IMG/VR virus record: IMGVR_UViG_3300042261_001312 | Span: 1-64,000 of that record | Direction: 5' to 3' (one strand) | Length of the DNA stretch: 64,000 nt | In this document: positions 5,288-57,200 of the stretch, piece after piece | Layout: each line of letters opens with the position of its first letter | Position numbering within the stretch: position 1 is the first letter of the stretch | The notes under the pieces: model-generated | Told to the model about the DNA's origin: nothing | Databases searched by the model: none | Seen by the model: the letters and a program-made list of their open reading frames with translations, nothing else | Translations under genes and position numbers: made by a program

Positions 5288-5359
5288 TAGTCGGAGCAGG
5301 ACTCGAACCTGCATACATAGCCACGTTCGCCATGCGCTAACCAATTACTATATCCGACT
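5288..5359 (-). ncRNA. tRNA-like RNA with non-canonical anticodon loop GAACGTG
   Basis: Acceptor AGTCGGA/TCCGACT, T-arm GCAGG-TTCGAGT-CCTGC; no U33. Confidence 0.6.
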
Positions 5360-5428
5360 AAGAGTCCGTGCTTTCCGAACTGTCAAATGCTTCATAACAC
5401 TTAGGCATTTTAGCATTAACTAACCACG

Positions 5429-5604
5429 TAGTCAGAACAGGACTCGAACCTGTAAGTCACATCTATTCCTACTTTGCTCCCAAGTACCTATCATATGTAA
5501 TTAGTATTAAACCATCTATCTTACATAATCAATATCGAAGCATTTGGTTTTTTATTACTGCCACTCACTCGTAGAGTGTGCGTCTGCCATTCCGCCATCC
5601 GACT
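5429..5604 (-). ncRNA. tRNA-like RNA with about 100 nt insertion between D and T arms
   Basis: Acceptor AGTCGGA/TCTGACT, Leu/Ser-type D arm GGCGGAATGGCAGACGC, T-arm ACAGG-TTCGAGT-CCTGT. Confidence 0.6.
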
Positions 5605-5669
5605 GTGTTCTACTTTTGATTTTTAATTTAGTAATCGCAGAATCAAAAAGTAGTAAAATAACTGCGCTG

Positions 5670-5795
5670 TGATTGGAACAGGAATCGAACCTGTAACCTT
5701 GGCATGTTGCACCACCTGTGCCTCCTACGGGAATTGTGGAATCGAACCACTGCCCACCTCTGCCACCAATGAGTTACCTATTACTCCATCCAACC
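5670..5795 (-). ncRNA. tRNA-like RNA with two T-loops
   Basis: Acceptor GGTTGGA/TCCAATC, D arm GAGT-AATAGGTA-ACTC, GTGG-TTCGATT-CCAC and ACAGG-TTCGATT-CCTGT; 5' end 10 nt from promoter 5805. Confidence 0.6.
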
Positions 5796-47706: not shown

Positions 47707-48798
47707 TTATGCAATATATTCGTATCCATCTTTGAATGGTTTACTATATACTGGTCTTATTTCTTTCCAAATTATTTCATCATATGGTTTTTTGTCATAT
47801 AATTTGAATAATATGGAACGATATTTTGATTTTATTGCTTCCATTGCAAATTTTTTACGTTCAACGATGTCATTGACATGATAAATTCTTATAAAATCTA
47901 TCAAAGCAAGTCTTTCAATTTCATTATATTCAATTTGCAAGTGCTTGATTGTTCTTTTCAACCAGTCGTAAAATTCGTCAGGTACTCTATCGAGTAATAT
48001 GTTGAAATCATAGTTATTTTTCAAGTGTTCCCATACAGTTAAGTTTGAAACATTTGTTAAAATACCGTGCAACCTAACATATTCGCTGAATTTAACCTTA
48101 ACTCTCATACCACTTGAAAACTTAACAACAAAACCTTCCATGTTATCTTCTTCAAGTCTTTTCAATTCCATCAAATTTTTGACATTATTCATGTCATATC
48201 TATTTACAATTGTAAAGTACTTGTGATAATTAACAGCCATGTCTCTGTATGTTAATTCCAAACCAGTTTTAGTGTCAATTACTGTAAGCAGTATCAAGTC
48301 ACGCATGTCGCCATAGTTGACAACGATTCTGTTTTCAGGATATATGACTTCAAAAACATATGTGAATAACTTATTTAATTTATCAAAAACATTCGTTTTT
48401 GATATTAGCATTTTTGTTGCTTCAGTCATTTGTTCAGAAATAAATGATCCTCTAGATGCAACAATCCATTTATTAACTGCTTCGTAATGAAACAATAAAA
48501 TCAACGAACCATCCATCTTTTCAAAAACTTCAAAGTCTTGCGACATATCAATTTCTGATGGATCATGTTCTTCATAATTTTTGAACTTAACCATTGGTCT
48601 TGCCAATATGTTACCTTCAGCATCAACAACCATTCCACGACATGAAAGCGTATATTCATCCCAAAATTTCTGTGATTGAGTTTTTGGTGAATAGTTTAAT
48701 ATCCAAATGTCATATTCTGGATGCTTATTTGATACAATAAGATTATTTTCAATGTATTCATTTAATACATTCCAATCAATTTTCTTCAATAATTCCAT
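47707..48798 (-). CDS. T4 Rnl1-type RNA ligase
   Basis: CRG, KFKN, EKMDGSL, SRGSF, EGFVV, RVKVK. Confidence 0.88.
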   Translation of the reverse strand: MELLKKIDWNVLNEYIENNLIVSNKHPEYDIWILNYSPKTQSQKFWDEYTLSCRGMVVDAEGNILARPMVKFKNYEEHDPSEIDMSQDFEVFEKMDGSLILLFHYEAVNKWIVASRGSFISEQMTEATKMLISKTNVFDKLNKLFTYVFEVIYPENRIVVNYGDMRDLILLTVIDTKTGLELTYRDMAVNYHKYFTIVNRYDMNNVKNLMELKRLEEDNMEGFVVKFSSGMRVKVKFSEYVRLHGILTNVSNLTVWEHLKNNYDFNILLDRVPDEFYDWLKRTIKHLQIEYNEIERLALIDFIRIYHVNDIVERKKFAMEAIKSKYRSILFKLYDKKPYDEIIWKEIRPVYSKPFKDGYEYIA

Positions 48799-53909: not shown

Positions 53910-54016
53910 TAGCGGGGAAGGGATTTGAACCCTCACGGTCATTACTGACCACCAGATTTGGGTTACTTTGTATGAAGTACTAAGTCTGGGATGTCTACCA
54001 ATTTCATCACCCCGCC
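53910..54016 (-). tRNA. Leu-type tRNA with a 21-nt insertion in the anticodon loop
   Basis: Class II body; CCAGA/TCTGG stem closes a 28-nt loop CTTAGTACTTCATACAAAGTAACCCAAA. Confidence 0.75.
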
Positions 54017-54021
54017 ATTTT

Positions 54022-54453
54022 TTATATCGCCAAAACCAATCTCAAATCTTCTTTGTTATAGATATGAACTACTGTACCTTGACCAAATATCATTTGAAAA
54101 TAATAGCCATTGAAATCACAGACTTCATTTGGAAATGAACAATCTAATTTTGGTACTTTAACAGATTCACCATTTCTAAAAACATAGTCAATAATAAATT
54201 GCATTTTGTTATTTGGATATGGCATAAATCCATTATGATAGCAATTAGTGATATAATTATCATCATGCTCTAAAATAACCCGATACATTAATTTATCGAA
54301 ATCATTATGTTTCAGCCATTTCCCAAATCGTTTAAAACGATTTAATTTAATATCTTCTTCTTTATTTTTAGACCCAAAATATTCTTTACCTTCTTCAGAT
54401 TCTGCCCATTCTTTGAGTTCTTTAATAATAATATCTATGTTAATTTTACTCAT
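54022..54453 (-). CDS. Hypothetical protein
   Basis: Open frame. Confidence 0.65.
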   Translation of the reverse strand: MSKINIDIIIKELKEWAESEEGKEYFGSKNKEEDIKLNRFKRFGKWLKHNDFDKLMYRVILEHDDNYITNCYHNGFMPYPNNKMQFIIDYVFRNGESVKVPKLDCSFPNEVCDFNGYYFQMIFGQGTVVHIYNKEDLRLVLAI

Positions 54454-54456
54454 TTA

Positions 54457-54810
54457 TCAATTATTAATATGTCCAACAATAGTTCTTTTCATTCCATTTT
54501 TATCAACAACAACTGCGGTTGAGTCACTTCCAATGAAATCAATTCTACATTTTCTCACGGATTGAAATGCAAACCAATTATTGTCGTCGATTTCAATGTA
54601 ATCACCGACTGAGTACAATTCTCCTCTAAATTCAAATTTTCTTTCCACTTGGTTCTTTTCTAAAACTCCATTTGTCAAATCCGAATTGTTCGATTTTGTA
54701 CTTGTCAGCAACTTCGACAATTTCTTTTTCACCTTTTCCCAAAACGCCACCCAAAAACATTTCAATCTCCTGAAATGCTTGGAATGCATCAAATATTTTA
54801 TAAAATTCAT
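54457..54810 (-). CDS. Hypothetical protein; only the C-terminal part is likely real
   Basis: N-part overlaps 54632-55333; a GTG start near 54648 is possible. Confidence 0.4.
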   Translation of the reverse strand: MNFIKYLMHSKHFRRLKCFWVAFWEKVKKKLSKLLTSTKSNNSDLTNGVLEKNQVERKFEFRGELYSVGDYIEIDDNNWFAFQSVRKCRIDFIGSDSTAVVVDKNGMKRTIVGHINN

Positions 54811-55333
54811 ATTCTTTCAATATTGGATTGAGATAAAATTTACCATTACGTCTACTATTATAATCATAATCATCATAAACAAAAACAGGCACATTAAATT
54901 CTCTAAAAATTTCAATCGGATTATAATTCATGATATAATTATAGTCTTCAGTTAAATTGGAGTGCCATCCTTCATTTTGAACAATTTCTCGAACCACATC
55001 AAAATCATATGTTGTTAAGACATTATCAACTTCACCGAATTTATGTGGTGTATAAAATTGAAATCCAACATAAAGTTTTCCACAGAATCCAACAATAAAA
55101 TGTGAATATGTTTCATATATTGAACGATATTCTTTCTTGAAAACATTACCTCCCAATCTCGTAAAAGCATTTCTGATTTTGTTTTCAGTACGATTGTCTT
55201 TTAATCTGAACATTGAAGGAAAATCTTTGCTTTCAACTTCAGTCAATTCACGATTATAAACAAGTGTTTTATCAACACCCATTGTACCTACAACACCATC
55301 GTAATAATCTTTTTTCTTTGAAATAATTAACAT
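54632..55333 (-). CDS. Conserved phage hypothetical protein (MLIIS..KDYYD...GFDKWSFR)
   Basis: Behind ECF promoter 55392. Confidence 0.7.
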   Translation of the reverse strand: MLIISKKKDYYDGVVGTMGVDKTLVYNRELTEVESKDFPSMFRLKDNRTENKIRNAFTRLGGNVFKKEYRSIYETYSHFIVGFCGKLYVGFQFYTPHKFGEVDNVLTTYDFDVVREIVQNEGWHSNLTEDYNYIMNYNPIEIFREFNVPVFVYDDYDYNSRRNGKFYLNPILKEYEFYKIFDAFQAFQEIEMFLGGVLGKGEKEIVEVADKYKIEQFGFDKWSFRKEPSGKKI

Positions 55334-55391: not shown

Positions 55392-55418
55392 TACGTAAAT
55401 AATGTTTAAAAGGTTACA
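55392..55418 (-). promoter_or_regulatory. ECF-type promoter
   Basis: TGTAAC-N17-CGTA. Confidence 0.75.
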
Positions 55419-56119
55419 TTATTTTTAATCCATTTTCGAATTGTGTTATCACTAACGCCATATTTTTTGCCTGTAGAAACATAACCAATTTCATTAACAT
55501 ACTTTAATAATTCATTCAAATCTGGTCGTACTTTTAATTTACGTAAATTAATGTGGTGACATTTTTTACATGTAGTACTTTCGTTGTTTATAATTGTACC
55601 ACATTTACAAAAATTATGCTTTGAACTCTTTTTAACTTTTTTGACTTTTTTTGAACATTTATTATTTTTACCACCAAATGTTTCTGATTGTGAATGACAA
55701 TTAGGGCATAAAAACTCCAAATTTTGAATTCTATTATCATTATTCACACCATTTTTGTGTTCTAATTGTAATGATAATTTTTTGCCGTTCCAATGACCAT
55801 TATTACCACATTTACATTTATATTCTAGCAACCCTTCACTTACCAAACGATTTTTTAATGTTGCTCTATTTGTATATGTGGAATTTTCAATTAGAATACT
55901 TTCAATTGGAATTCTATTTTTATTTTTCCCACTCTCGCCATAATAATGGTATTTAGGAATTTCAATGTTTCTTTTTTTTAATTGTGATTTAATTGTTGCA
56001 TATCCACCACTACCATTACTACAATAGCCAAATGTTATTAATGCTTCTCTTAATGATTTACTTTGTGACAATACACAAATAATTTCCTTGTTACTGTACT
56101 TCTCAATTTTACTGCTCAT
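55406..56119 (-). mobile_element. HNH homing endonuclease with C-terminal HTH
   Basis: LQLEHKNG.NNDNR..NL..LCPNCHSQ. Confidence 0.88.
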
Positions 56120-56755: not shown

Positions 56756-56803
56756 AATTTATATTTTTTCAATAAATACTGATGTCTGGAGATTCCAGAA
56801 ATG

Positions 56804-56876
56804 TATCCCGTCTCAGATTCGAACTGAGAAACTTGGGTTTTGAATCCAATACGGTTGCCAATTACGTCAACGGGAC
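56804..56876 (-). tRNA. tRNA-Leu(CAA), short variable arm
   Basis: TTGGA-TTCAAAA-CCCAA. Confidence 0.82.
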
Positions 56877-56881
56877 ATATG

Positions 56882-56956
56882 TGGAATCGAAGGGCATCGA
56901 ACCCTCACGTCTTCTGAGTGCAAATCAGATGTTTTAGCCAATTAAACTACGACCCC
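56882..56956 (-). tRNA. tRNA-Ala(TGC)
   Basis: GGGGTCG/CGATTCC with G3:U70; TCTGA-TTTGCAC-TCAGA. Confidence 0.9.
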
Positions 56957-56968
56957 ATGTTAATTTTG

Positions 56969-57041
56969 TACTCTCGGTGAGATTCGAACTCACAACATTT
57001 TCATTCTAAGTGAAACGACTCTGCCGTTGGTCTACGAGAGC
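56969..57041 (-). tRNA. tRNA-Leu(TAG), short variable arm
   Basis: TTTCA-CTTAGAA-TGAAA. Confidence 0.85.
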
Positions 57042-57047
57042 ATATTG

Positions 57048-57120
57048 TACACTCGGTGAGATTCGAACCCACACTGGACAGTTTCTTAGACTGACGACTC
57101 TACCGTTGGTCTACGAGTGC
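57048..57120 (-). tRNA. tRNA-Leu(AAG), short variable arm
   Basis: TCAGT-CTAAGAA-ACTGT. Confidence 0.82.
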
Positions 57121-57126
57121 ATATTG

Positions 57127-57200
57127 TGACTCAAGTCGGACTCGAACCGACACTGTATTGCTTTTAAAACAATTGTCTCCTGCCGTTGGACTACTGAGCC
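57127..57200 (-). tRNA. tRNA-Leu(TAA), short variable arm
   Basis: ATTGT-TTTAAAA-GCAAT. Confidence 0.85.

Follow-up and report, generated by a model that had tools for sequence, protein, structure and literature searches.

In the literature we searched, the characterised tRNA introns of bacteria and phages are self-splicing group I introns, such as that of cyanobacterial and plastid tRNA-Leu(UAA), which sits between U34 and A35, is at least 200 nt long and is autocatalytic. The "enigmatic" introns in tRNA genes of Lak megaphages (Devoto et al. 2019, PMC6784885) are non-group-I insertions in the anticodon loop of Tyr, Phe, Gly and Thr tRNAs (at the position that tRNAscan assigns), present in some genomes and lacking from others at the same gene, and their splicing remains unexplained; the one whose sequence we examined (tRNA-Tyr of A1, Table S6) is 93 nt long and holds a T-arm-like hairpin, and a second is reported to encode a possible tRNA. 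The protein-spliced tRNA introns of archaea and eukaryotes are short introns of the anticodon loop whose sequence evolves freely while their structure and length are kept, processed by EndA/Sen plus RtcB or Trl1 (a bulge-helix-bulge (BHB) motif of 3-4-3 with a splice site in each bulge, position 37/38). T4 Pnkp and Rnl1 repair anticodon-loop breaks made by the host nuclease PrrC, and can replace yeast tRNA ligase in the joining step of tRNA splicing. Finally, collaborative or trans homing by free-standing homing endonucleases is documented in phages (cyanophage S-PM2 F-CphI with the psbA intron, T4 mobE with I-TevIII, T4 SegB in the tRNA cluster; PMC2790892, PMC2988022, PMC3984707, PMC6083498): an endonuclease gene sits next to an ORF-less intervening sequence and not inside it, the two are inherited together with the flanking exon, the intervening sequence lies where it would split a target in a conserved gene, and the known partners are self-splicing group I introns of more than 200 nt.

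We analyzed a stretch of 64,000 nucleotides (hereafter the window), which is the first 64 kb of a single 327,676-bp contig with 31% G+C, classed as a complete virus record, from freshwater lake metagenomes. It carries about 40 tRNA genes. One of these, a leucine tRNA gene, is split inside its anticodon by a 21-nt hairpin that is conserved in related phages and linked to a homing-endonuclease gene; this looks like a kind of tRNA intron not described for bacteria or phages, its removal from the RNA being inferred from sequence alone. Literature searches for short phage tRNA introns found only the Lak report, and we found no report of a 21-nt endonuclease-linked element inside an anticodon. The features discussed below are collected in the following table.

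Table. Features of the interrupted tRNA gene and of associated loci (window coordinates unless stated otherwise).
Position	Strand	Feature	Basis
53910..54016	-	Interrupted type-II tRNA-Leu gene, 107 nt, no encoded CCA	Rfam RF00005, 40.8 bits (gathering score 29, E 1.1e-6); cloverleaf MFE; syntenic with uninterrupted tRNA-Leu(UAA) genes in relatives
53981..54016	-	5' exon (tRNA positions 1-35; ends ...CUUA)	Alignments against nine uninterrupted orthologues
53960..53980	-	21-nt intervening sequence GTACTTCATACAAAGTAACCC, between anticodon bases A35 and A36	Exact 21-nt gap against orthologues; unique in the 327.7-kb genome; homologous 21-22-nt inserts at the same site in three other alleles
53964..53979	-	Hairpin within the insert: bases 2-6 pair with 13-17, 6-nt loop	MFE fold; RNAalifold on four alleles
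53910..53959	-	3' exon (AAA of the anticodon loop, stem, long variable arm, T arm, acceptor, A73)	Alignments against orthologues
54022..54453	-	Conserved 143-aa ORF immediately upstream, synteny anchor, function unknown	102 homologues; same neighbour tRNA in relatives; confident model (pLDDT 94.8) without convincing fold match; no PHROG or NCBIfam hit
55406..56119	-	Free-standing HNH endonuclease gene, 1.4 kb upstream of the interrupted tRNA	phrog_10822, E 2.9e-41; about 34% identical to the HNH ORFs abutting the interrupted tRNA in L025 and L027; absent at this place in L001
57246..57806	-	Second HNH endonuclease gene in the tRNA cluster	phrog_10822 / phrog_1271, E about 3e-21
47707..48798	-	T4 RnlA (Rnl1)-like RNA ligase, candidate sealing enzyme	phrog_562, E 3.8e-65; TIGR02308, E 7e-24 / 1.9e-23, below the equivalog cut-off; conserved in the same cluster in relatives with and without the insert
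57126..57200	-	Second tRNA with anticodon UAA (75 nt, short variable loop), possible functional back-up	ARAGORN; Rfam 51.1 bits
genome 96570-97106		Kinase module, 178 aa	phrog_505, E 5.6e-17; TIGR04075, E 2.1e-14
genome 274224-274393		tRNA with Lak-like insert of ~83 nt	

An earlier note, made from the letters alone, had described here a Leu-type tRNA with a 21-nt mini-intron-like hairpin in the anticodon loop, and this observation was confirmed. The gene reads as a cloverleaf with a 7-bp acceptor stem (G1-U72), a 3-bp D stem with a Leu-like D loop, a 5-bp anticodon stem (CCAGA/UCUGG), a 5-bp variable arm, a standard T arm and A73, and in the Rfam alignment 24 loop residues stand where the model has 3. 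Its anticodon loop thus holds 28 nt instead of the 7 nt of a loop able to decode, a length that it would regain only upon excision. The MFE fold gives the cloverleaf plus the hairpin UACUU-cauaca-AAGUA inside the loop (-35.2 kcal/mol, z -2.4), and a 5-bp hairpin arises in only 3.7% of shuffles of the 21-mer. The identical sequence, insert included, lies in Logan contigs of three DNA runs from two studies, which may include the source sample, and no insert-less variant was seen among them.

To determine what the uninterrupted gene looks like, we used the conserved upstream ORF to pinpoint syntenic loci in metagenomic jumbo-phage contigs, which share the surrounding gene order. Nine of these loci (numbered L001, L009-L014, L019 and L047) carry an ordinary 86-91-nt tRNA-Leu(UAA) at the corresponding place, whose loop is CUUAAAA in eight and CUUAAAC in L009, and whose sequence is 69-83% identical to the window exons; the insert-less genomes of L011 and L012 are 348 kb and 372 kb long. 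Every alignment places the insert between CUUA and AAA, so that its removal restores CUUAAAA and the simplest product is tRNA-Leu(UAA), with junctions A35|G and Y|A36. The earlier note had proposed that excision could leave UAG (Leu) or CCA (a Trp anticodon on a Leu body) and did not list UAA. Splicing in another register, which we consider improbable, would give tRNA-Leu(UAG), with the first insert base kept as base 36, or a Leu-bodied tRNA with anticodon CCA or UCA that reads UGG or UGA. UAG remains possible, as the first base of the insert is G in all alleles and CUUAG+AA can be formed in all four. CCA is only the register of ARAGORN, which becomes UCA in two of the other alleles (L025 and L027) and gives no 7-nt loop in the third (L007), and we reject it. 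Against these registers, the orthologues show UAA, the phage has its own tRNA-Trp, and reading TAG or TGA as sense does not lengthen ORFs beyond chance, so the code is standard. In long ORFs, UUA is the commonest leucine codon (44% of Leu codons) and UUR codons make up 69%, while CUA plus CUG make up only 9%.

To assess whether the insert is conserved, we scanned for interrupted genes by sequence pattern and found three more alleles in syntenic relatives whose proteins are roughly 45-57% identical to those of the window: L007, from a sediment metagenome (insert of 22 nt), L025, identical to L029, from IMG/VR (21 nt), and L027, from IMG/VR (21 nt). L025 and L027 lie on contigs of 83 kb and 34 kb. 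L027 and L007 score 42.0 and 35.2 bits with the Rfam tRNA model. Two strict DNA patterns had found no insert-bearing homologue in IMG/VR, a scan of genome contigs gave one false hit (an ordinary bacterial tRNA-Leu whose variable arm matched), and two relaxed IMG/VR scans added only non-tRNA chance hits, so that the known set is four alleles. Similarity searches of the region and of the tRNA against 50,697 phage records yielded only a partial hit to a crAss-like tRNA-Leu. In all four alleles the insert lies after CUUA and before AAA. The inserts are 10-17/21 identical to one another, against 67-99% for the exons, with G1, U5U6, A14 and A17A18 invariant. The hairpin keeps its register and was predicted independently by RNAalifold, with pair 3-16 going from A-U to G-C and pair 4-15 from C-G to G-C, and none of 500 shuffles reached the observed covariation for the whole structure, although four sequences is a small sample. 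A G1-N21 closing pair was considered and dropped because the insert of L007 is 22 nt; for the same reason two of the MAFFT alignments misplace the 3' anticodon-stem strand of L007, and the 75% pairing obtained for that helix is an alignment artefact. One condition that the note gave for its refutation, an insert that is unique and degenerate, is therefore not fulfilled.

We then compared L025 and L027, which both carry the insert with an HNH gene in front. Their HNH genes and downstream DNA are only 75-80% identical, whereas their exons are 85/86 identical, the 15 stem and tail bases of the insert are identical, and all four differences in the insert fall in the 6-base hairpin loop. At the divergence of the flanks, about 17-20 exon differences would be expected if the gene were dead. 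This argues against a decaying pseudogene and indicates that the interrupted gene is under purifying selection, and that the hairpin stem and tails matter while the loop sequence does not.

The insert-bearing alleles fall in three exon clades, each with insert-less close relatives (L027 is 99% identical to L012, L025 95% to L047, and L007 84% to L001). The clearest case is L025 against insert-less L047: there is no difference over 1,814 nt starting at the first base after the insert, while before that point L025 carries the 21-nt insert, four substitutions in the 36-nt 5' exon, all of the L027 type, and 2.1 kb that L047 lacks. The last gene of that 2.1 kb is an HNH endonuclease gene (phrog_10822, E about 1e-28) ending one or two bases before the tRNA, at L025 5251-5715, and L027 has the same arrangement, with its HNH gene at L027 1156-1608. 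The chimera leaves a U-C mismatch in the anticodon stem of L025. This is the footprint expected from double-strand-break repair in endonuclease-driven gene conversion, and it matches phage precedents in which a free-standing endonuclease mobilises a neighbouring ORF-less intron (PMC2790892, PMC2988022, PMC6083498), although the direction of the L025/L047 event, gain or loss, and the cleavage specificity are inferences. The window and L007 lack an HNH gene directly next to the tRNA; in the window a gene of the same family is the nearest copy, and on the 5.5-kb contig of L007 no endonuclease match was seen, the one downstream ORF scanned giving no family.

To identify how the RNA might be handled, we searched the phage genome for known splicing machinery. 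A scan of the four alleles for a 3-4-3 BHB motif with flanking helices of at least 2 bp found none, and MFE and suboptimal folds put both junctions at the base of one hairpin. A search with TIGR00324 found no EndA in the phage genome (E<=1), while the control search found it in 4 archaea, and no RtcB, LigT or Rnl2 was found. An archaeal/eukaryal-type intron cut at a BHB by an EndA-like enzyme is thus very unlikely, despite its typical length and its place in the anticodon loop, and its position is 35/36, not 37/38. At Rfam gathering scores the genome has no group I or II intron, ribozyme, RNase P RNA or tmRNA. A related viral contig (L032) has a genuine 203-nt group I intron in the same tRNA one base upstream, at U34|A35 (RF00028, 70.8 bits), which could suggest that the insert is a degenerate remnant of the classical intron. 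However, the inserts show no significant similarity to it, the insertion site differs in three of four alleles, and neither the window nor the genome gives an RF00028 signal. We regard such a remnant as very unlikely, and equally an assembly or chance artefact, as the sequence is identical in three runs and homologous in independent metagenomes. The phage does encode the Rnl1-like ligase, inside the tRNA cluster, and the Pnk-like kinase module elsewhere in the genome. T4 PseT matches the latter only over its residues 4-49, the neighbouring ORFs hit no family, and no phosphatase/CPDase module for healing 3' ends was found. As T4 Pnkp plus Rnl1 reseal anticodon-loop breaks and can carry out the joining step of yeast tRNA splicing, sealing is plausible, whereas no cutting enzyme is identified, and the ligase, being present in insert-less relatives too, is not specific to the insert. 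The only metatranscriptome from the same study holds nothing from this region.

The note's reading as a mini-intron is thus partly supported. It was right that this is a Leu-type class II tRNA, that the insert is 21 nt, forms a hairpin and is far too short for a group I intron, that there is no clean BHB and that the phage encodes an Rnl1 ligase; the anticodon needs correcting as described above, "intron" implies an excision for which there is no RNA evidence, and the HNH-linked gene conversion could not be seen from its material. Our preferred explanation, held with moderate confidence, is a conserved, horizontally mobile 21-22-nt intervening sequence that splits the anticodon of a jumbo-phage tRNA-Leu(UAA) and travels at the DNA level with a free-standing HNH homing-endonuclease gene. 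We infer that the endonuclease cuts the uninterrupted tRNA-Leu gene of co-infecting relatives near the anticodon, that repair then copies the endonuclease gene, the 5' exon and the insert into the recipient, and that the insert splits the target site so that carriers are immune, which would be collaborative homing with a 21-nt element in place of a group I intron. As the interrupted gene stays under purifying selection, we further infer that the hairpin is cut out of the precursor by a protein endonuclease not yet identified, phage or host. The two tRNA halves, held together by the cloverleaf, would then be resealed in the anticodon loop, most plausibly by the Rnl1-like ligase after 5' phosphorylation by the Pnk-like kinase, to give a tRNA-Leu(UAA) reading the commonest leucine codon of the phage. 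Our analysis itself establishes the structure, the position, conservation and covariation of the insert, the selection on the exons, the recombination junction with the mobility and HNH linkage, and the enzyme inventory, whereas the endonuclease target and immunity, the excision (about as likely as not), the cutting and sealing enzymes and the exact junctions rest on inference.

An unlikely but possible alternative is that the insert is a selfish target-site disruptor that is never spliced, only protects carriers from the HNH endonuclease and spreads by gene conversion, the dead tRNA being tolerated because another tRNA(UAA) and the host tRNAs exist. The HNH linkage and conversion junction, the lack of splicing machinery among the families searched, the back-up tRNA(UAA), which makes the gene possibly dispensable, and the stem mismatch tolerated by L025 are in line with this. 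However, immunity at the DNA level alone would not select for the near-identity of the L025 and L027 exons, for the invariance of the CUUA and AAA loop bases in all four alleles, or for compensatory changes in the hairpin with substitutions confined to its loop. It is also conceivable, though doubtful, that the unspliced RNA is the functional product, a tRNA-like molecule that cannot decode. Bacterial LeuRS does not read the anticodon, so the RNA could still be leucylated and act as a decoy for a host anticodon nuclease, or as a leucine donor or regulator. The conserved body, the structured hairpin replacing the anticodon, other Leu-like type-II bodies with enlarged anticodon loops in the same genome, and the evolution in phage tRNAs of anticodon loops that escape host nucleases (PMC10264068) speak for it. 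Against it, all seven canonical loop bases are kept unchanged around the insert, which a non-decoding RNA would not need, the alleles alternate with ordinary tRNA-Leu(UAA) at the same locus in near-identical phages, and the hairpin loop, its most exposed part, is the least conserved.

Compared with the Lak introns, the present insert is far smaller, a simple hairpin without a tRNA-like or T-arm element, lies inside the anticodon and is HNH-linked, while in the parts of the Lak report and its supplement that we consulted no hairpin covariation, selection test, endonuclease linkage or conversion tract is reported. Compared with collaborative homing, the partner is a 21-nt hairpin with no ribozyme, so harmlessness must come from trans-acting enzymes or from redundancy. 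Compared with T4 repair, the breaks would be programmed and two in number, with loss of 21 nt. The case can be analyzed by comparison, as the ancestral uninterrupted gene is known, four diverged copies show what is constrained (site, length, hairpin stem, G1 and an A-rich tail), the interrupted gene is kept by selection and one recombination junction is mapped to the base. If the RNA is spliced, this would reveal a new endonuclease, give phage Rnl1/Pnk a physiological role beyond damage repair and show that a homing endonuclease can partner with a 21-nt element instead of a ribozyme. Tentatively, phages of this family may possess a tRNA-splicing pathway of a kind not known in bacteria or their viruses, in which an as-yet-unidentified endonuclease recognises the tRNA body plus the 21-22-nt hairpin and cuts inside the anticodon at 35|36, an Rnl1-type ligase reseals the loop, and the intron is a minimal mobile element kept in circulation by a free-standing HNH endonuclease; this would give T4-type tRNA repair enzymes, and possibly bacterial tRNA-half ligases, a natural splicing substrate. 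If the RNA is not spliced, this is a clear example of endonuclease drive maintaining a disrupted gene, or of a non-decoding tRNA-like RNA.

The 21-mer has no other copy or near-complement in the genome at up to 5 mismatches, so a guide or antisense role within the phage is not supported. For the predicted structure of the 143-aa upstream ORF, Foldseek and VIA-align returned no match of note (best Z 5.5, on a beta-meander). ORFs next to the other enlarged-loop tRNA-like loci show no endonuclease. Default ARAGORN misses the interrupted gene, calling it Trp(cca) i(35,21) only with introns allowed, and the default filters of Rfam also drop it when the search space is large, so that such interrupted tRNAs are probably under-counted in phage annotation.

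The ORF that is always found just upstream of the interrupted tRNA-Leu is predicted to fold with very high confidence (pLDDT 94.8) into five helices plus a four-stranded sheet, and we found no family and no convincing structural relative for it. Two of the related contigs that carry an insert in this tRNA-Leu, L007 and L025, have a tmRNA gene (Rfam 85 and 110 bits, respectively) located between the homologue of this ORF and that of window ORF 54632-55333. The window's own genome has no tmRNA at the Rfam gathering score. The positions of all these features are summarized in the table.

Positions of the additional tRNA-related and neighboring features
Sequence	Positions	Feature
window	56803-57200	four short tRNA genes with leucine anticodons
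L001	1170-1243	short tRNA gene with a leucine anticodon
window; genome (locus L006)	62895-62979 and 37694-37779; 64712-64803 (L006 712-803)	tRNAs with long variable arms and anticodons UUG, GUU and UGG
window	33976-34047	tRNA with anticodon CUA
genome (locus L003)	274224-274393 and 274512-274631 (L003 2224-2393 and 2512-2631)	Leu-like class II bodies with enlarged anticodon loops
window	5288-5795	cluster of three tRNA-like elements
L007; L025	4073-4448; 8577-8929	tmRNA genes
L032	2337-2626	tRNA-Leu(UAA) with a group I intron
L025 vs L027	insert bases 7-12	hairpin loop of the insert
window	54022-54453	ORF just upstream of the interrupted tRNA-Leu
window	53910-54016	interrupted tRNA-Leu gene

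Between L025 and L027 (a further insert-bearing relative), the insert stems, the insert tails and the 5' exon are identical, while the hairpin loop of the insert differs at 4 of 6 bases. This is more than the 20-25% divergence of the flanks would predict, and may reflect chance, a relaxed site or diversifying change. The same tRNA gene is interrupted in a different way in L032, a viral contig with a similar tRNA-Leu(UAA)/Leu(CAA) arrangement, where a genuine and very short (203-nt) group I intron lies at U34|A35 of tRNA-Leu(UAA), so that two kinds of interruption of this gene occur among phages. As the interrupted gene of the window is missed both by ARAGORN with default settings and by Rfam cmscan with gathering filters on a large input, interrupted phage tRNAs are probably under-annotated.

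Elsewhere in the genome we identified two further Leu-like class II bodies (A73, leucine-type D loop) with enlarged anticodon loops. One has an insert of ~83 nt that starts after UUUA with GUA and holds a T-arm-like hairpin, like the Lak phage intron that we read, and it scores 29.1 bits in Rfam, while the other has a loop of ~36 nt. Both lie in a 1-kb non-coding stretch, with no endonuclease gene beside them. A separate cluster of three tRNA-like elements shares acceptor stems of the AGTCGG type (Rfam 32.3 and 23 bits, with “introns” of 85 and 36 nt called by ARAGORN); these may be degenerate or rearranged tRNA genes.

Four tRNA genes of the window, and one in L001 (a syntenic relative without the insert), have leucine anticodons (UAA, AAG, UAG and CAA) but are only 74-75 nt long, with short variable loops and A73, although leucine tRNAs are normally class II. 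The converse also occurs, with tRNAs that have long, paired variable arms but anticodons UUG (Gln), GUU (Asn) and UGG (Pro), each sitting beside a normal-length isoacceptor. Relatives show similar cases, including an 88-nt Asp and an 82-nt Glu tRNA in L025, an 84-nt Lys tRNA in L029 (which carries the same insert allele as L025) and an 84-nt Trp tRNA in L001. Finally, the window encodes a tRNA with anticodon CUA (amber suppressor type, Rfam 64 bits) in a genome whose ORFs give no sign of TAG recoding, TAG being the stop codon of 17 of 259 long ORFs.
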